Both the position numbers and the translations under genes were made by a program. Positions 13,262-64,000 of a stretch of DNA of 64,000 nt are shown here, piece after piece (position 1 is the stretch's first letter; each line of letters starts with the position of its first letter). The stretch is from sequence record MZ475895.1. One strand, given 5' to 3'. Under the pieces are notes generated by a model. That model made no database searches and had not been told where the DNA came from. It worked only from the letters and a program-made list of their open reading frames with translations.

Positions 13262-14518
13262 ATGGGACGTGGATTTGGTGACATTCAGGACAACAGCAAA
13301 CGCGATAGCCTTCGCGAGTCCGAAATTTTTGAAATCTTCCCTTTAGCGAAGAAAGCAAACGGCGCGTGGGTATCGATTCGTCTGTTGGACCTTGACCTGC
13401 TTCCAATCAAGAAGCACTGGATTAAGATCATGGGCGGGAAAGATAAAGATAAGGAAATCAAAATCCCGCGTATGTGCGTCAGCTTCGACCCTGACAATCA
13501 GAACAAGCCGCTCAAAGGCATGAAGTGTCCGTACTGTGGTATTCAACACGGTAACGATGAGTCGGGCGCACCAGCGCAGTATGACTACAAGTGGTACGCG
13601 CAAGCAATCATCCGTGATGTGCAGGCCGGTGCTCCTCGCAAAATGCCGAGCATGACTAAGAAAGAACAAAAGTCAGGCAAGAAAGAAATGGGCAGCGAGT
13701 CTTGGACTCCTGTGCAGTGTATCGGTCTGTCAAACTCTCTGGCAAGTAAAATCCAGCAGCTGGGTGAGCGTAACATTCACACGGTCAAAGATAAGAAAAC
13801 CGGTAAGAAGTCTAAGCAGGCGTTCCAGGTTAACCATCCGAAGTATGGCTGTGATATTGAAATCAAATACAACGCCAAGAAATCTCCGGCTGAACGTTAC
13901 ACCCTCGAACGTGGCGATCATACTCCACTGACGAAAGATGAACAGGCGTATCTGACCTGGGACTTCGACAACTGGAACGAAATCTACGACCTGCTGGGCC
14001 GTCTGGACGAAGATGCTGCTATGGCAGACTTCAAAAAGATGGACGTTCTCGGCGGTGAGTCTCAAGTCGATGGAGACGACGATGAAGACGAAGACGATGA
14101 TGACGACATGGCGCTCGGCAAGAAAAAGAAAGGCGCCAAAGGCAAAGCGGACAAGAAAAATCGCCGCTCAATGGACGATGATGACGAAGACGACGACGAA
14201 GACGATGAAGATGATCGTCCGTCAAAATCTAAGAAGTCCAAGTCCAAGTCGAAGTCTCGTGCTCTGTTAGACGACGATGAAGACGATGAGGACGAAGACG
14301 ATAAGCCTAAGAAGAAAAAGAAATCTTCTAAGGACAAGCCGTCCAAGTCGTCTAAAGTGAAGTCCAAAAAGTCTAAGAAGTCAGATGATGACGACGAAGA
14401 CGAAGACGACGAAGATGATAAGCCGAAGAAGAAAAAGAAATCCTCTTCGGTGAAGTCGTCGTCTAAGAAAAAGTCTTCGAAGGACGATGAGCCTAAGAAG
14501 AAAAAGAAAAAGAAGTAA
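13262..14518 (+). CDS. single-stranded DNA-binding protein (gp32-like) with block-charged D/E-K tail
   Basis: Position between sigma and recA; IRLL, C..FDP...KCPYC and NHPKYGCDIEIK gp32-like motifs; about 150-aa low-complexity tail. Confidence 0.65.
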   Translation: MGRGFGDIQDNSKRDSLRESEIFEIFPLAKKANGAWVSIRLLDLDLLPIKKHWIKIMGGKDKDKEIKIPRMCVSFDPDNQNKPLKGMKCPYCGIQHGNDESGAPAQYDYKWYAQAIIRDVQAGAPRKMPSMTKKEQKSGKKEMGSESWTPVQCIGLSNSLASKIQQLGERNIHTVKDKKTGKKSKQAFQVNHPKYGCDIEIKYNAKKSPAERYTLERGDHTPLTKDEQAYLTWDFDNWNEIYDLLGRLDEDAAMADFKKMDVLGGESQVDGDDDEDEDDDDDMALGKKKKGAKGKADKKNRRSMDDDDEDDDEDDEDDRPSKSKKSKSKSKSRALLDDDEDDEDEDDKPKKKKKSSKDKPSKSSKVKSKKSKKSDDDDEDEDDEDDKPKKKKKSSSVKSSSKKKSSKDDEPKKKKKKK

Positions 14519-22490: not shown

Positions 22491-22519
22491 AAAAGGGTGG
22501 CCTAAGGGTCGCCCTTTTT
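22491..22519 (+). terminator. intrinsic terminator
   Basis: AAAAGGGTGGCC-TAAG-GGTCGCCCTTTTT. Confidence 0.85.
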
Positions 22520-41072: not shown

Positions 41073-41123
41073 GATTACGAGCACTGTATGCTCGTTTCTA
41101 CTGATTCAAGAGGATAAGACAAT

Positions 41124-44491: not shown

Positions 44492-44557
44492 AGCAGCTAG
44501 AGCATAAGCTCTCACGTTTGCATTTACTATACGTTAAATACGGGAACCTCACATATT

Positions 44558-54001: not shown

Positions 54002-54054
54002 AAAAGCGTAGCTTGTGCTGCGCTTTTTTACTTTCTGTCTGAGGAGACAACAAA

Positions 54055-54703: not shown

Positions 54704-55141
54704 ATGAAATTTGATCAAGCACCAACGAAAGCACAACTCGTGCTGCTGGCCCTCGCTCTCGAATCCGTTCTCCTCTCTATGGAGAAAACGTTTATCAACC
54801 GTAATCTGCTGGAGCAGTTACTTGCGAAGTACGGCATCTCGTTTAACGATCTGAAAGAGTTGCGAGAGTACGGCGAAAAGCATTCCGCCATCGGTACCAG
54901 CGTTGCTCAAGTTATGGAGATAGCTGCCTTGCATGTGGCTCATCTGAAAACAGAACCTGTGCCTGAATACAGTCAAGACGACCTTGATCTAATTCGCGTA
55001 GAATACGAGCCAATCGATACGTCTGTCCTACGCCAGGGCGCTGTGAATGATGGGGTTATCACAGTGCAGCAAGCAGCCACTTTTGAGCGCGATCAGATAC
55101 TGACTGCTATTCTTGAGTACCGACTGCGCTCAGAAGCATAA
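54704..55141 (+). CDS. hypothetical protein (145 aa)
   Basis: GAGGT RBS before ATG 54704. Confidence 0.75.
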   Translation: MKFDQAPTKAQLVLLALALESVLLSMEKTFINRNLLEQLLAKYGISFNDLKELREYGEKHSAIGTSVAQVMEIAALHVAHLKTEPVPEYSQDDLDLIRVEYEPIDTSVLRQGAVNDGVITVQQAATFERDQILTAILEYRLRSEA

Positions 55142-55145
55142 ATCT

Positions 55146-55188
55146 GGACAAAATCGTGGTTGTAGCAAAAACCGTCCTATGTTATAAT
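55146..55188 (+). promoter_or_regulatory. GGWCAAAAT-box promoter (copy 9)
   Basis: GGACAAAAT 55146, TTGTAG-17-TATAAT 55183. Confidence 0.75.
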
Positions 55189-55194
55189 AGAGAT

Positions 55195-55279
55195 GTAGCG
55201 TAGACGTGAGGTATGCGCTATAAATTGAATGACGCGTTTTTGCTTGACTGTAAGGTAGCGGTATCTTACAGTCCTTTTT
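55195..55279 (+). ncRNA. candidate small RNA / leader attenuator (about 85 nt)
   Basis: Promoter, 5' hairpin, then GACTGTAAG-loop-CTTACAGTC-CTTTTT; no ORF. Confidence 0.4.
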
Positions 55280-55397
55280 CAAGTGGCTTCGAAGTTTGAG
55301 GCTTCTTGCGAAAGGTCAAATGTACCTTTGAGCGTTTTCGGATTTACGCGGTTTTCACCGACTGCGCTCTCACTTTAAACCGCAAAGGAAATACATC

Positions 55398-56219
55398 ATG
55401 CCAGAAGCACGCAAACCTCGCCCAGCTGATCGTTTCGCTAAAGCCCGTGCAGAGAAAAACTCACCGGAGCGTCAAGATGCGGCAGCCCAGCGCACGTATA
55501 AAGACACTCCGCCTAAATCTGTTCAGGTGAAACTTGATGCTGTGGCAGCTTCTAAGAAGAAAGTTTCTCGCGGCCCCAAGGCCTCTCGTCCACGTCAGTC
55601 GCCTGCTGTTGACGCAGCACCAAAGCCTCGCATTCGTGATGAGGAACGTGTGTACAATCTCGTACACATGATTCTCTCTGCGTGGAAAGCCGATGCAGAA
55701 AACGCGGCAGCAAGTGTGGGAATCATTAAAGTGTCTCGTCGTAAGATTGAGGGTGCGTTACGCGATCTCAAGAATACGCGCTTCACTAAAATCCCAGGCT
55801 TAATCAATGACGTGCTTGTCTACAATGAACTGGTAGCTGAGTTCGGACAGTGGGTGTACGTCGAGCACGACAGTCCTGATTGGATTTTTGTGCGCCTGCC
55901 TGAAAACAGCACGCCTGTGATTCGCGCTGACATTAGCTATGCCAAGACGGGTGAAACTTCCACGTCTGTTTCGACTTCTAGTGAAGTTCTGCTGAAAGAT
56001 CTTAGCGAAGACGAAGAAGATGAGATCCCCGAGAATGTCGAGTACGACGATGCGGACGAGACTGACGAAGACGAAGAGGAGCCGTATGACTACAGCGCTT
56101 GGTCTCTGCGTGACCTGCAGGAGTATGCGAAGCGCTATGACTTCTTGCAGCCCGACACTGAGGGGTTTGATGATCGCGAGAAGTTGATAGCAGCCATCGA
56201 GCTGGGGGAACAGCACTAA
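55398..56219 (+). CDS. basic-N / acidic-C protein with terminal HeH-like module (273 aa)
   Basis: AAGGA RBS; R/K/P-rich N-terminus; EDEEDE...DYSAWSLRDLQEYAKRYDF...DREKLIAAIE. Confidence 0.8.
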   Translation: MPEARKPRPADRFAKARAEKNSPERQDAAAQRTYKDTPPKSVQVKLDAVAASKKKVSRGPKASRPRQSPAVDAAPKPRIRDEERVYNLVHMILSAWKADAENAAASVGIIKVSRRKIEGALRDLKNTRFTKIPGLINDVLVYNELVAEFGQWVYVEHDSPDWIFVRLPENSTPVIRADISYAKTGETSTSVSTSSEVLLKDLSEDEEDEIPENVEYDDADETDEDEEEPYDYSAWSLRDLQEYAKRYDFLQPDTEGFDDREKLIAAIELGEQH

Positions 56220-56229
56220 GCACAAATAT

Positions 56230-56273
56230 GGACAAAATAGTGGTAGCATCTAAAGCATGACCTGTGCTACACT
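56230..56273 (+). promoter_or_regulatory. GGWCAAAAT-box promoter (copy 10)
   Basis: GGACAAAAT 56230, TGTGC-TACACT 56268. Confidence 0.7.
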
Positions 56274-56279
56274 ATAGAT

Positions 56280-56334
56280 CGAATGCCTTGTAGTTTTTTG
56301 ACTGTGAGTTACTTTCCGGCTCACAGTCCTTTTT
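56280..56334 (+). ncRNA. candidate stand-alone small RNA (about 55 nt)
   Basis: Promoter copy 10 followed by GACTGTGAG-loop-CTCACAGTC-CTTTTT; the next gene has its own promoter. Confidence 0.45.
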
Positions 56335-56402
56335 AAAGTGCTCTCCCAAGAACGCTTTAAAAAGCACAGACTGCCTGCGCTTTTGATAGACAGCATAAAT
56401 CT

Positions 56403-56445
56403 GGACAAAATCATGGTTGTATCAGAATGCTGCCTGTCATACACT
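56403..56445 (+). promoter_or_regulatory. GGWCAAAAT-box promoter (copy 11)
   Basis: GGACAAAAT 56403, TTGTAT-17-TACACT 56440. Confidence 0.72.
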
Positions 56446-56506
56446 TTAATGAGTCGAGCAATAGTGCTCGCAACAAACTAAATCCCAATACTGAGGAGTA
56501 TTACAC

Positions 56507-58096
56507 ATGGCACGTTTCGAAACTAACACTAACCTGGTTGGCAAAACTATCGTCCTGCTGAACGGCACCAAAGCGAAGATTGAAGACGCTATCGTTTCTG
56601 GCTACAAAGTGAAAGGCCAGACCAAGCGCATCGCAACCCGTGACGTTATCAAAGAGGGTGCGCACTTTAAAGAAATCGAGCGCACGCCGCTGAGCCAGCT
56701 GGAAGATACTGGTGAAGGTTATGTGAAGTTGAAAGAAGCCAAAGCTGCTTCTAAGAAAGCGCCTGCGAAAGACGCTAAAGCTACTGGCAAAAAAGCTGCG
56801 GCAAAAGACAAGCCTGCTAAGACCAGCAAAAAAGCTGCCGCTAAAGATAAGCCAGCGAAAGAGCAAGAGCCGAAAGTTCGCCGTAAGTCTGCGAAAGAGC
56901 AGGGCAACGATTATCAGGAACTCGCGCAGGCTATCATCAAAGGCGGTCGCCGTGCAGCGCCAGTTGAAATTGACAGCGTAGACGAAGCGCTGACCGATGC
57001 AATCGCTAAGCGTCTGACCGCTGTTGTCGAATCGTCTGAGATTGCGAAACTCGCCGCTGATAACAAAACGCCGATCGCTAACGCACTGACCGTAACTTAC
57101 GGTGCTGAGTTTGCGACTGATGCAAACGTTGTGCAGATTACGCTGAACCTGCAATACGCTAAGCCGACTGCTGTTGAGTCTGCCGCTCCTACTCTGGAGA
57201 ATGCCGAAGCAATCGCAATGCGTGCTGCTAAAATGGCCGCGCCGAAAGTGAGCGCTAAACTCAAGAAGGCAGTGCGTGAAGCATTCGATATTGAAACAGA
57301 CCTTGAGCTGGGTACTGTGATTATGTCAGGCGATGATCAATTCGCTTACTACGGCGAAAGCGCGAAGCACGCTGGCAAAGCGCTGCTGTATGTTGTCGAA
57401 ACTGACAAGTTCAAATCTGTCTTGGCCTCTACTCTGACCGACTACGAACTGCCTGCTGATGAAGAAGCTGAGGCAGAAGAAGAGGAGGAAGAAGAAGAGG
57501 AGGAAGAAGAACCCGCTGATGACTTCGACGACGAAGAGGAAGAAGATGCGGACGATGCAGATGATGCCGACGATGCTGATGGCGACGACGACGAATTCCA
57601 GTACGTTGCTGTAGGCGATGAACACTTTGCTCTGGTCAACAAAAAGATCACAGCCAAGTATCACGATGCACTGGCTGAGCAATTCGGCGTTAGCACCGAA
57701 GCGCTGGTCCCAGGCTTAGTGTTGACCAACGGCGAGATCACTTTCGCTTATCTGGGCAACGATAGCAAAGGCGGCCTGCTCGTTATCGACCTCGACGACG
57801 ATGCGGACGAAGACGACAACGTTCTGGTCTACCCGAAAGCCGACGTTAAATCTCTGACCGACTTCTCTCCTGTGCTGGGTGATGCAGATGAAGAAGACGC
57901 AGACGATGCAGAAGAGACCGACGAAGAAGACGAAGATCAGGACGACGACTTCGAATTTGACGATGCGCCGACTGCCGACCTCGAAGATCTGTCCGACGAT
58001 GAGCTGCGTGACCGCGCTGTTGAGATGGGCCTGACCACTGTACGCAAAGCTGACAAAATGAACGCCAAGCAACTGCGTGCGCTGCTGTCTGAATAA
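56507..58096 (+). CDS. modular protein: shared N-domain, histone-H1-like AK repeats, acidic tracts, C-terminal HeH-like module (529 aa)
   Basis: GAGGAG RBS; KKAAAKDKPAK x2; poly-E/D; DLEDLSDDELRDRAVEMGL. Confidence 0.85.
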   Translation: MARFETNTNLVGKTIVLLNGTKAKIEDAIVSGYKVKGQTKRIATRDVIKEGAHFKEIERTPLSQLEDTGEGYVKLKEAKAASKKAPAKDAKATGKKAAAKDKPAKTSKKAAAKDKPAKEQEPKVRRKSAKEQGNDYQELAQAIIKGGRRAAPVEIDSVDEALTDAIAKRLTAVVESSEIAKLAADNKTPIANALTVTYGAEFATDANVVQITLNLQYAKPTAVESAAPTLENAEAIAMRAAKMAAPKVSAKLKKAVREAFDIETDLELGTVIMSGDDQFAYYGESAKHAGKALLYVVETDKFKSVLASTLTDYELPADEEAEAEEEEEEEEEEEEPADDFDDEEEEDADDADDADDADGDDDEFQYVAVGDEHFALVNKKITAKYHDALAEQFGVSTEALVPGLVLTNGEITFAYLGNDSKGGLLVIDLDDDADEDDNVLVYPKADVKSLTDFSPVLGDADEEDADDAEETDEEDEDQDDDFEFDDAPTADLEDLSDDELRDRAVEMGLTTVRKADKMNAKQLRALLSE

Positions 58097-61599: not shown

Positions 61600-64000
61600 A
61601 TGTCCGAGAACAATCAAAGCGGAGCTACTCGCTTCGGCACAGAAGTGCAGGCCGGCATCGCAGAAGCGCAACGCCGTGCTAACTCTGCTGAGAGTGGCAA
61701 GCTGAACAAATGCACGATCATCGTGCTGACTTCGATTGACGCCAACCAGCGTTACTCTTATCTGTCCGCAGACGAACAACTGCGCGAAGAACTGGTGCGT
61801 GGTAAAGTAATCAATCGTCTGCCTGATCTGTTAGAGCGTGCTGGTGGTAATACCGCTGCTGACAATAACAGCGCGTTCCACATCCTGCATCCAAACAACG
61901 GTGTGCCTACCTCGATCGATGCTCGCATCAAAGTGGGCGAAGGCAATGCGGTCATTCTGTCATATACTGTAAACAAAGCAGTGACAGAGATGCACGGTAG
62001 CTTATCGCTTGCTCTGTTTGCATCTGGCGCCGAAGACTTAAATGATCTGGCCGCTGATTTCGGTATTCACGCAATTGCGATTGTTGAAGAATCGAAAGCC
62101 GCTGAGTTCATCAAAGGACTTGAAGCTCAGGTGGAAGCGTTGAATATTGTAAATCTCACTAGCATTGATGATTCTAACGATTCGTTAGACCTGCCAGTGA
62201 TTGACTTCGCTGCATTAGCGGGCAATCCTACAACAGTGCTTACGGGCGCTGTGCGTACCTTCATCATGCAATCAATCAGCGGCGAAGTCTTCGCTGCAAT
62301 CCCTAATAACGGAGAACTGAACGTGAAAAACGATAACGTGGCTCAGCCTGCTGACCTGGAAGAAGACTTCGACAACAATGATGAGATTGTTGATCAGAAC
62401 GGCGGCGAAGGCGAAGTTACTGGCGAAGAGCTGCTGGGCTACAAAGCAGAAAATCTTTCGCTTGACCAAATGCGTAGTGCGCTTGAAGCGATCAACTACG
62501 ACCTGTCTGAAATGACGGAAGAAGCAATCCGTGAAGCGTTCGAAACTGAACAGAACCTTTACCTGGGTGGCGGCGATGATGAATCTTCCGAAGAAGAGGA
62601 AGATGAAGACGCCACTGATGTTGACAGCGACGAAGAAGAAGAGGAAGAAGACGAGGAGTTCGATGCTCCTGCGTATCTGGCTCAAGCGCTCGCTGCTGAA
62701 AACTTTAGCCGTAGCGATCTGAAACTGCTGGTCAAGTCGCAAGACCTGAAAGTGATGAAGAACGACACTCCTGAAACTCTGGTGCAGAAGCTGCTGGACC
62801 TGGTGCAGGACGCATCGTCTGATGAAGTGTTCGAACTGATCACTGTGTTCGTTGAACTGCTGGACGAGCACGGCGTTGAGTGTGACGCGCTGCGTGCTAC
62901 CATCGCTGAGGATGAAAGCGATGAAGACGAAGAAGAGGACGGCGAAGACGAAGACGCCGATGAAGATGGCGACGACGAAGAAGAGGAAGATGAAGAGGAG
63001 TCTGATGAAGACGAATCTGAAACCGAATCTGACGACGAACCTGCAACGCTGTTTTCTGCCTCTGACGTTACTGATCCTCTCGACTACTTCCAGTTCGAAG
63101 GTGGTGACCTGACTCACGAACAACGCGCCGCTGCCGTACAGGCGATGGGTTCAAGCACTGTTGGTCTGAACATCGTTCAGGTCATGAAAGCGTTCAATCA
63201 AATCCGTTCACAGTCTAACGCGATTGACATTGCCGCTGATGAAGCCGACTCTGCGCTGTACGACATGCTGACTGCGCTGCCGTATGCAACGCTGCTGAGC
63301 TTCGCTCAAGAGATTGAGCTGGACGTTGACGGCGAAGAGTCTGCCGAAGATCTCGTCACTTTGCTGATGGACGAATCTACTGCCGACAGCGATACGCTGA
63401 AAGCGCTGGCGTATGTGTTTGAAACCTACGGCGGCCTGGGTGTTGAAGCAGATGATATCCTGCTGATGGACTGGCATGAAGCGCTGGCGCTGGTTATTCC
63501 TGTGTATGCATCGTCAGACGAAGTTGAGTCCGATGCAGAAGAAGACGAAGACGAAGACGTTATCGCTGATGAAGATTCGTCTAACGCTAACCTGAAGTTC
63601 CTGAAATCTGTTGACGTCAACAACCCTGTCGGCCCGATGCTCGAAGTTGATATGGACCGCACTCTGGTTATCAACTACACCTTCACTGACGGTAACACTT
63701 ACCGCGATGTGCAAGATGAGCTGGCTGATATCGGTGGCGTTAACTACCGCTTCCCGTTCAATCTGGGCAAAGCTGGTAAAGCAAACAAGAGCAGCGCGCC
63801 TGGTAGCCTGATTGCTCCTGCTGAACATCTGATCGCAATGTTAGACCGCGCTGGTACTACTCGCTTCTTAGCTGACCCGAACACCTTCGATGTTGGTGTG
63901 TGGGCAGAATCTCTGGAGCGTATGCTGAACGCAGAAATCGCTAACAATCTGTATGCTGGTCGCATTGAAGACGGCGCTGACCCGCAGCAAGCTGGCATCG
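61600..64000 (+). CDS. very large acidic multi-module protein (at least 800 aa, runs off window; missing from ORF track)
   Basis: GAGGAG RBS, ATG 61600, frame read manually with no stop to 63999; poly-D/E tracts alternate with HeH-like helical modules. Confidence 0.88.
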   Translation, partial: MSENNQSGATRFGTEVQAGIAEAQRRANSAESGKLNKCTIIVLTSIDANQRYSYLSADEQLREELVRGKVINRLPDLLERAGGNTAADNNSAFHILHPNNGVPTSIDARIKVGEGNAVILSYTVNKAVTEMHGSLSLALFASGAEDLNDLAADFGIHAIAIVEESKAAEFIKGLEAQVEALNIVNLTSIDDSNDSLDLPVIDFAALAGNPTTVLTGAVRTFIMQSISGEVFAAIPNNGELNVKNDNVAQPADLEEDFDNNDEIVDQNGGEGEVTGEELLGYKAENLSLDQMRSALEAINYDLSEMTEEAIREAFETEQNLYLGGGDDESSEEEEDEDATDVDSDEEEEEEDEEFDAPAYLAQALAAENFSRSDLKLLVKSQDLKVMKNDTPETLVQKLLDLVQDASSDEVFELITVFVELLDEHGVECDALRATIAEDESDEDEEEDGEDEDADEDGDDEEEEDEEESDEDESETESDDEPATLFSASDVTDPLDYFQFEGGDLTHEQRAAAVQAMGSSTVGLNIVQVMKAFNQIRSQSNAIDIAADEADSALYDMLTALPYATLLSFAQEIELDVDGEESAEDLVTLLMDESTADSDTLKALAYVFETYGGLGVEADDILLMDWHEALALVIPVYASSDEVESDAEEDEDEDVIADEDSSNANLKFLKSVDVNNPVGPMLEVDMDRTLVINYTFTDGNTYRDVQDELADIGGVNYRFPFNLGKAGKANKSSAPGSLIAPAEHLIAMLDRAGTTRFLADPNTFDVGVWAESLERMLNAEIANNLYAGRIEDGADPQQAGI

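Follow-up and report, generated by a model that had tools for sequence, protein, structure and literature searches.

In phage lambda, the constitutive promoter pR' is followed by a close intrinsic terminator, tR', which gives rise to a 194-nt '6S' RNA and is read through after Q antitermination; until the polymerase becomes terminator-resistant only the short RNA is produced, and the genes beyond the terminator depend on read-through. Other RNAs mimic the tRNA acceptor/T-arm minihelix, such as the tRNA-like domain of tmRNA and the RNase P-processed phage RNAs C4 of phage P1 and CI of phage P4. Promoter activity together with terminator or attenuator activity has been demonstrated for promoter-early stem-loop cassettes (PeSLs), known from T4-like phages (PMC2839356, Arbiol et al. 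2010; PMC4122927, Comeau et al. 2014). In the giant phages 201phi2-1 and phiKZ, termination close to the transcription start site, giving short RNAs that stem from 5' untranslated regions (5'UTRs), has been measured by ONT-cappable-seq, and one such structure is conserved across giant-phage genera (PMC11512511). The present analysis concerns two hairpins, here called P1, each followed by a U-tract, in a 64,000-nt stretch of sequence record MZ475895 (positions 186001-250000, hereafter the window, whose numbering is used below). The window lies within a long plus-strand block of small unannotated genes. As in the PeSLs, a repeated intergenic sigma-70-like promoter, an A/T-rich element and a stem-loop stand here among small early ORFans; as in 201phi2-1 and phiKZ, a putative terminator is located just past a promoter in the 5'UTR of a conserved gene.

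The two hairpins are, with near certainty, real RNA structures under strong structural selection, and they appear as paralogous copies of one module consisting of P1, a C followed by five U residues (C+U5) and a second hairpin, P2. P1 together with its U-tract is probably a leaky promoter-proximal intrinsic terminator, or attenuator, which in the first copy lies ahead of gene 55398. Statements on promoters, start sites and termination are drawn throughout from sequence and comparison.

The two hairpins and their conservation in relatives

The earlier note on this DNA, made from the letters of the window, had placed both hairpins correctly. Their arms are GACTGTAAG-10 nt-CTTACAGTC in copy 1 and GACTGTGAG-11 nt-CTCACAGTC in copy 2, each continued by CTTTTT. 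A degenerate pattern describing such a hairpin has exactly two matches in the window against 0.00 expected (100 shuffles), and folding yields free energies of -15.0 to -15.8 kcal/mol for copy 1 and -14.9 to -15.7 kcal/mol for copy 2, with z-scores of -6.2 and -5.7, respectively. Both were also recovered by a simple terminator scan. The association of hairpin and U-tract cannot be chance. As the note had described, the sole difference between the stems is at pair 7 (A-U in copy 1, G-C in copy 2), the loops are unrelated and the flanks are alike, with a T-run upstream and CTTTTT[C/A]AAGTG downstream. A covariance-model search was run, with a pattern search, on the whole genome (264,285 bp) and returned these two copies alone: the model, built on 21 modules, gives them 65 and 62 bits, and the next real candidate 15 bits.

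The segment 54600-57200 of the window is 100% identical to the Erwinia phages pEa_SNUABM_14 and pEa_SNUABM_7 (~265 kb) and 97-99% identical to seven sister isolates; the nine SNUABM_14-like genomes are near-identical (97-100%). Alexandravirus phages of Erwinia and Dickeya show ~75-80% identity to it, in parts. The homologous region was gathered from 15 GenBank phages, eight metagenome or genome contigs encoding homologues of the downstream protein, and IMG/VR copies. Twenty-one distinct modules (Alexandravirus, Rivsvirus, Yoloswagvirus and metagenome contigs) were aligned, and 20 distinct full leaders were aligned separately and analysed with RNAalifold and pair counting.

Retention of the stem in relatives, on which the earlier note had made its proposal partly depend, is general: every relative gathered carries a hairpin of -12 to -20 kcal/mol followed by C+U5. 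The stem sequences seen are GACTGTAAG, GACTGTGAG, GACCGTGTG, GACCATGTG, GACCACG, GACCACATG, GACTGCGTACG, GACTGTATG, AGTCGTGTG and GCGTACAATC, with three more in Yoloswag. Two-sided changes affect nine of nine P1 pairs in the 21 modules and eight of nine in the 20 full leaders. Standard pairs are formed in 98.9% of the P1 cells of the modules, a count which, like the other cell counts given here, overstates the number of independent events because several relatives are close kin (at least ten different stems are involved). For the whole tested structure, pairing reaches 98.0% in the modules but only 37-60% in controls with the 3' partner shifted by 1-3 columns, and none of 500 shuffles attained the observed values; in the full leaders it reaches 96.8% against 34-49% in the shifted controls. 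Selection on RNA structure, as the earlier note had supposed, is borne out by these figures. The P1 loops, in contrast to the stems, range from 4 to ~30 nt, are unrelated and show no conservation, whereas C+U5 is invariant in the 21 distinct modules, with U4 in AD1. An invariant U5 combined with free loops is the signature of a terminator and not of a protein-recognised loop.

Predicted promoters and the case for termination

The GGACAAAAT motif, taken in the earlier note as a promoter ahead of each hairpin, is part of a longer repeated unit. Starting at the stop codon with which the preceding gene ends, this unit runs from an A-rich element (GCA[T/C]AAAT-CTGGACAAAAT), placed like a proximal UP element, through a TTG-containing -35-like hexamer and a 17-18 nt spacer to a good -10 hexamer, often with TG upstream. 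Eight copies of the pattern occur genome-wide, all in a 32-kb part of the window (24.6-56.4 kb). Since the unit occupies the same places in relatives, the eight are very probably host sigma-70 early promoters. Transcripts are predicted to start at ~55195 for copy 1 and ~56280 for copy 2. P1 begins at ~+51 and ~+22, respectively, that is 58 and 27 nt after the -10 hexamer, so that RNAs ending in the U-runs would measure ~85 and ~55 nt. No plausible open reading frame (ORF) is present between promoter and hairpin in either copy, again as had been noted, and the gene after copy 2 does have a promoter of its own, GGACAAAAT at 56403 with the -10 hexamer TACACT, every relative having a promoter here. 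No terminator precedes any of the eight promoters; most are followed by some hairpin, three (53959, 55146 and 56230) by a hairpin with a U-run, and only two carry the P1 module.

Both copies display sequence and structure features of intrinsic terminators: a stable stem, a U-tract within 0-2 nt (one C intervenes) and conservation of the stem but not of loop or sequence. The module is also found at ordinary terminator positions, directly after a stop codon in Yoloswag and after an inserted ORF in contig L043, and no other terminator occurs between successive genes at this locus. Hairpin and U-run terminators are clearly used elsewhere by this phage, in both strand blocks. The canonical ones are short GC-rich tetraloop stems directly abutting T5-8 and placed after genes, and an identical terminator sequence, GGGTGGCTTCGGCTGCCC, is reused at at least five distant sites on both strands. 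Ordinary terminators are located, for instance, at genome positions 19066, 35878, 106427(-) and 135274(-) and at window positions 22495, 28087, 40008 and 48711. The module is not the general terminator type of the phage, being present in only two copies in 264 kb and differing in appearance from the canonical terminators. P1 is AU-richer than these, has a C spacer and is followed by only five U residues, and therefore should be leaky. Moreover, gene 55398 lacks a conserved promoter of its own, so read-through must occur.

It is proposed that P1+U5 acts as a moderately efficient Rho-independent terminator for host RNA polymerase. It would end transcription arriving from the upstream gene, which has no terminator before the promoter, and would abort part of the transcripts of the adjacent strong promoter, the ~85-nt (copy 1) and ~55-nt (copy 2) RNAs being a by-product. 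The mRNA of gene 55398 would be made by read-through polymerases alone, which would make the module an attenuator or insulator, and the downstream helices would act on this mRNA through translation or stability. Copy 2 would be the product of a duplicated or recombined cassette in the SNUABM_14 lineage, now insulating gene 55398 from the promoter of gene 56507.

Several observations weigh against this proposal. P1 is weaker than the canonical terminators, with 4-5 G-C among 11-12 pairs, the C spacer and five U residues, and termination cannot be efficient unless it is relieved, given that a conserved promoter of gene 55398 itself is lacking. A conserved A-tract further downstream, kept even in four modules without the helix P3 of the leader, is able to pair with the U-tract, and the U-run may thus be conserved for RNA folding rather than for termination. 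By inspection, no upstream segment complementary to the 5' arm of P1 was detected in either leader type; in the absence of an upstream competitor of the stem, regulation of read-through would need a protein or a modification of the polymerase. However, no antiterminator protein, Q-like or N-like protein (among the eight neighbouring proteins screened) or qut-, nut- or put-like element was identified. A fair sigma-70 match, TTGACT-17-TACAGT, is located inside P1 copy 1 (55244-55272) with starts that would fall in the U-run; absent from relatives, this sequence might constitute an internal promoter bypassing the copy 1 hairpin in this lineage. Conservation of copy 2 is confined to genomes 97-100% identical to one another and hence is no independent sign of function. 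Finally, a literature search found no transcription study of these phages.

Two suggestions of the earlier note have to be modified accordingly. An attenuator remains plausible insofar as a hairpin with U5 resembling an intrinsic terminator does separate the promoter from gene 55398, but a classical antitermination switch in the RNA is not supported, no alternative antiterminator pairing having been found: the conserved extra structure is all downstream of the U-tract, too late to influence termination. Likewise, the statement that gene 55398 has no other visible promoter holds for conserved promoters between P1 and the ATG; the match inside P1 in this lineage may be an exception. A palindromic DNA operator formed by CTTTTTAAAG and CTTTAAAAAG is disfavoured, since the spacing of the half-sites varies from 26 to 33 bp.

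Other members of the promoter family are associated with other hairpins. A third promoter-proximal hairpin (54002-54033; AAAAGCGTAGC-TTGT-GCTGCGCTTTT with a T-run, -13.9 kcal/mol) begins at, or adjacent to, the start predicted for promoter 53959; its sequence is unchanged in SNUABM_1 although its surroundings have diverged. If the start is inside the 5' arm, upstream transcripts could be stopped and those of the promoter itself spared, as in PeSLs. Small 5' hairpins without a U-run are present at other promoters of the family (41077-41095, 44499-44512 and 56455-56470) and are probably 5'-end stabilisers; the one before gene 56507 covaries in relatives (GACGC/GCGTC vs CGAGCA/TGCTCG).

The leader of gene 55398, additional copies and rival readings

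Downstream of the copy 1 promoter, the predicted leader of gene 55398 extends over ~200 nt and includes P0, P1+U5, P2, P3, P4/P5, a probable pseudoknot and the Shine-Dalgarno sequence (Table 1). A BLAST search with the copy 1 intergenic region showed the best conservation downstream of the U-run, recognisable as far as Yoloswagvirus and Salmondvirus.

Table 1. Positions of the module copies, leader elements, predicted promoters and gene 55398 in the window
Feature	Position	Strand	Description
Copy 1 promoter	55133-55188	+	UP-like CTGGACAAAAT 55144-55154; -35-like TTGTAG 55160-55165; TGn-extended TATAAT 55183-55188
P0	55195-55221	+	5' hairpin of leader; in type-A leaders loop CGUGAGG conserved, stems vary
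P1 copy 1	55246-55273	+	12-bp hairpin with GCGG loop; stem of terminator-like signal
C+U5 tract copy 1	55274-55279	+	CTTTTT, adjoins P1; predicted 3' end of ~85-nt short RNA
P2 copy 1	55280-55308	+	Lower stem CAAG..CUUG, upper stem GCUUC..GAGGC (RNAalifold)
P3	55311-55329	+	6-bp stem, 7-nt loop (CAAAUGU in the window)
P4/P5	55330-55369	+	GAGCG..CGCUC closing inner CGG..CCG helix
Gene 55398	55398-56219	+	273-aa early protein served by the leader
Copy 2 promoter	56217-56273	+	GGACAAAAT at 56230; TGn-extended -10 TACACT 56268-56273; in the nine SNUABM_14-like genomes only
P1 copy 2 with C+U5	56300-56334	+	Hairpin 56300-56328, CTTTTT 56329-56334; predicted 3' end of ~55-nt short RNA
P2 copy 2	56329-56364	+	Perfect CUUUUUAAAG/CUUUAAAAAG pairing around a weak inner hairpin
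Gene 56507 promoter	56390-56445	+	GGACAAAAT at 56403; -10 TACACT 56440-56445; then 5' hairpin 56455-56470

The stems of P0 differ yet pair in phB78, SNUABM_30 and SNUABM_5 (by inspection); copy 2 and contig L042 lack this hairpin. P2 has the consensus [A/C]AAG..CUU[U/G] in its lower and GCUUC..GAGGC in its upper stem, with double changes at five pairs, and becomes longer if the U-tract pairs with the A-tract (55274-55314); this U5:A5 extension is invariant, with one pair mismatched in type-A leaders. P3 in relatives is a perfect look-alike of a tRNA T-arm (AAAGGG-UUCGAUA-CCCUUU). Two of its pairs are double-changed, from G-C to A-U in three sequences and with one U-A; in the lineage of the window the T-loop is swapped for an unrelated 7-nt loop and the 6-bp stem is unchanged. 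P4/P5 appears in the leader set as GAGCGC..GUGCUC around a variable, compensating inner helix, and six pairs are double-changed once the distant phage JA13 is included. The loop of P4/P5, GCGGUUU (55348-55354), could form pairs with the segment AAACCGC (55377-55383), which ends two bases ahead of the Shine-Dalgarno sequence AAGGA (55385-55389); with one double change and two G-U pairs, this loop-to-tail pairing is a probable pseudoknot. The 3' element of the leader occurs once per genome in 15 jumbo-phage genomes of IMG/VR and nowhere else in that collection. The covariation of helices downstream of the U-tract implies that the read-through RNA itself is a selected product.

Searches with Rfam 15 gave no match in the window at gathering score, none at E<=1 in seven relatives and none at E<=10 for the leader elements. 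A small ORF within the 70 conserved nucleotides was rejected: two frames are open but have no conserved start or Shine-Dalgarno sequence, and the substitutions are those of compensatory pairs.

Comparison of the window with SNUABM_13 reveals a sharp boundary within the leader. The first ~190 nt of the aligned intergenic region, from the promoter through P2, are identical, and ~20 differences are clustered in the last ~80 nt (55316-55400 vs L001 3717-3800), including a 9-nt block which replaces the T-loop. This last part of the window leader looks like a recombination patch. In the new loop, AUGUA has a complement, UACAU, in the stretch that separates the Shine-Dalgarno sequence from the AUG, and the minimum free energy (MFE) fold pairs the two. 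When a relay from P3 or extended P2 to the Shine-Dalgarno sequence was examined by folding energies, the two states were near equal, and pairing of the Shine-Dalgarno sequence showed no consistent difference between them. P3 (6 bp) also abuts P4 (6 bp) without a spacer, giving a 12-bp coaxial helix of the length of a tRNA acceptor/T-arm minihelix, a possible handle for RNase P or T-arm-modifying enzymes.

Copy 2 (56217-56400) is placed after the stop codon of gene 55398 and ahead of the gene 56507 promoter. It consists of a promoter, a short unstructured 5' segment, P1, U5 and P2, without P0, P3 and P4, and is restricted to the nine SNUABM_14-like genomes. Its flanks resemble the leader type of other lineages (type B) and its stem that of copy 1. 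It is, by this comparison, a lineage-specific partial paralogue of copy 1. Similar rearrangements are seen in relatives. Yoloswag carries three tandem modules (L017 236-775), one of them directly after a stop codon and before a promoter. In contig L043 (585-1203) two modules bracket an extra 75-aa ORF, the downstream one following the inserted ORF directly without a promoter of its own immediately upstream. In phB78 and SNUABM_30 (L008/L009 700-1064) promoter, P0, P1, P2 and P3 are kept, the gene and the 3' element are lost and the next promoter follows directly. The P1-P2 module has evidently been duplicated independently in three lineages.

It is possible, if somewhat doubtful, that copy 2 has no function and is a solo cassette left by PeSL-like recombination, too young to have decayed. 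Its restriction to genomes of 97-100% identity, its truncated and mosaic structure, and the gain and loss of genes bounded by cassettes in phB78/SNUABM_30, L043 and Yoloswag would all fit such an origin. However, the change in its stem is compensated, its 10-bp U/A pairing is perfect, its U5 is intact and it outscores copy 1 against the family covariance model; moreover, with duplications in three lineages, additional copies would seem to be tolerated or of use.

A pattern scan of IMG/VR for the module returned this phage group and a few isolated matches. One of these, L021 1570-1624 (IMGVR_UViG_3300045789_000617), shows the same two-hairpin layout between two genes (GCCCC..GGGGC, CTTTTTAAAG, a small hairpin and CTTTAAAAAG) and has neither tblastx similarity to nor genes shared with this phage; it reflects either convergence or chance. 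The notion that the module is widespread in other viruses was not retained, the matches beyond the phage group and L021 looking like chance.

The earlier note had regarded the hairpins as a candidate pair of small RNAs (sRNAs). As free-standing units these are not upheld, since copy 1 turns out to be one helix of a leader conserved across several phage genera. The short terminated RNAs could still be two trans-acting sRNAs of the Hfq type directed at host or phage mRNAs, each made up of P0 or a single-stranded 5' segment, the terminator hairpin and a U-tail, read-through then being secondary; the idea is compatible with termination at P1 but rather unlikely. Each unit does have a predicted promoter and a 3' end that resembles a terminator, and neither contains an ORF; parts of the segment 5' of P1 are conserved (the P0 loop CGUGAGG in type A, and the linker AAUGCC/AAUGAC); orphan units, with no gene following, are retained in phB78/SNUABM_30 and as copy 2; and sRNAs derived from 5'UTRs by premature termination have been reported in giant phage 201phi2-1 (PMC11512511). 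Yet copy 2 has no P0 and its 5' segment is unlike that of copy 1, orphan copies are confined to near-identical genomes, and the downstream module of L043 is kept without a promoter directly upstream. A search of the phage genome for complementarity to the short RNAs gave self matches only. Furthermore, the helices past the U-tract are at least equally conserved and covarying, which points to selection on the read-through RNA.

Alternatively, P1 and the U-run could be architectural, without termination, in a folded leader that controls stability, processing or translation of the mRNA or binds a protein. U5:A5 pairing is possible in every module, occurs in the MFE fold of both the window leader and copy 2, and is kept in the four modules lacking P3 (copy 2, modules 1 and 2 of Yoloswag and module 1 of L043); conservation of the A-run in these hints that the pairing matters. 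The near-equal energies of P3 and extended P2 in most leaders, the stacking of the T-loop hairpin P3 on P4 and the weakness of P1 relative to canonical terminators are in keeping with a structural role. It is nevertheless judged improbable. The U5:A5 pairs never vary, so that covariation is silent on them, and one is mismatched in type-A leaders; the T-loop was lost in the window lineage without decay elsewhere; and some modules occupy ordinary gene-end positions. A free loop, a stem that stays between -12 and -20 kcal/mol and a U-run placed strictly next to it exceed the needs of folding and suit a terminator.

Three more novel readings, namely a bistable leader, a mimic of the T-arm minihelix and an N-like autoregulatory antitermination, are allowed by the data but unsupported by evidence, and together they have only a slim chance of being correct. 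In the bistable reading the U-tract would be either free, with P3 formed, or paired with the A-tract, with P3 melted, and the state would be read by a factor. Candidates for this factor would be Hfq, RNase P or T-arm enzymes acting on P3/P4, or the basic N-terminus of gp55398 acting on P0 in the manner of lambda N. If true, premature termination would be coupled to processing of the leader and to translation of a conserved early regulator, and the element would be both a portable cassette and a phage leader RNA of a new class.

A reading of the element as a tRNA, or as a degenerate gene for one, can be practically dismissed: ARAGORN does call a 95-nt tRNA-Glu(ttc) in SNUABM_13, and P3 of most relatives is a perfect T-arm look-alike, but the program finds none in the window and 14 other relatives, the Rfam tRNA model is silent even at E<=1, the would-be acceptor pairing is unconserved with its 3' strand belonging to the covarying helix P4, the 'D arm' has 9-12 bp and the 'anticodon arm' >15 bp, and the T-loop is absent in the window. 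The 95-nt tRNA-Glu(ttc) annotated in GenBank MZ475891 (pEa_SNUABM_13; L001 3642-3736, equivalent to window 55241-55335) is a spurious call, put together from P1, P2 and the T-arm-like P3.

Among the proteins of the locus, gp55398 combines a basic motif conserved at its N-terminus with a central domain of ~110 aa, likewise conserved; an acidic tail precedes its HeH/SAP-like C-terminus. Pfam and PHROGs gave nothing significant for it and were silent on eight neighbouring proteins. An AlphaFold model based on an alignment of database homologues has a mean pLDDT of 70, and a fold search against the PDB gave no match at E<0.1, with weak winged-helix-like matches only. Proteins 55398 and 56507 both end in a HeH/SAP-like motif (encoded at 56100-56216 and 57990-58093; weak match to Pfam Ish1, E = 0.009) after long Asp/Glu-rich tracts, and acidic repeats are found in many genes of the window, for example at 14060-14430, 57450-57960 and 62560-63020.

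Comparison with described systems

Like the canonical terminators of the same phage, P1 is a hairpin with a U-run on the transcribed strand; it differs in being longer and AU-richer, in its C spacer, in its position after a promoter and in being followed by conserved RNA structure. The likeness to lambda pR'-tR' is a loose one: here a single gene (55398) needs read-through, and the promoters look early, not late. With the mimics of the tRNA acceptor/T-arm minihelix, the leader shares a T-loop consensus in P3 (UUCGAUA) and the stacking of this hairpin on P4 to a total of 12 bp. However, P3/P4 have no free acceptor ends or CCA and the T-loop was lost in the window lineage, which leaves a resemblance only. 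The giant phages 201phi2-1 and phiKZ possess their own RNA polymerases and other promoter and terminator motifs and have no sequence relation to this locus; the present module is known from sequence alone, but the comparative evidence, in the form of covariation, is much stronger for it than for theirs.

The combination of this leader with a probable attenuator-type terminator is undescribed for Alexandravirus-like jumbo phages and belongs to no described family by sequence or descent. Several of these phages are under development against fire blight, and the locus offers testable parts: a family of early promoters, a putative promoter-proximal terminator or attenuator, for which the comparative support is very strong, and a ~200-nt leader absent from Rfam which precedes an early gene ranking among the group's most conserved. 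The analysis also sets right a wrongly annotated tRNA in GenBank. Should termination be confirmed, the module would provide a compact natural insulator for phage engineering and, if the leader responds to a factor, it would represent a new riboregulator.

The differences from the PeSLs are of several kinds. The phages concerned are unrelated to T4, only two of eight promoters carry the module, and the module, which would work like a PeSL, is not one by descent. In PeSLs the stem-loop is located inside or over the promoter, whereas here P1 is 22-51 nt downstream of the predicted start, so that the promoter's own transcripts also meet it. An additional second hairpin is present, and copy 1 runs into a long gene-specific leader. 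In both cases, nevertheless, the insertions, deletions and replacements of genes that set close relatives apart are bordered by the cassettes. This suggests that the shuffling of promoter/stem-loop cassettes, described so far in T4-like phages, also operates in an unrelated lineage of jumbo phages.

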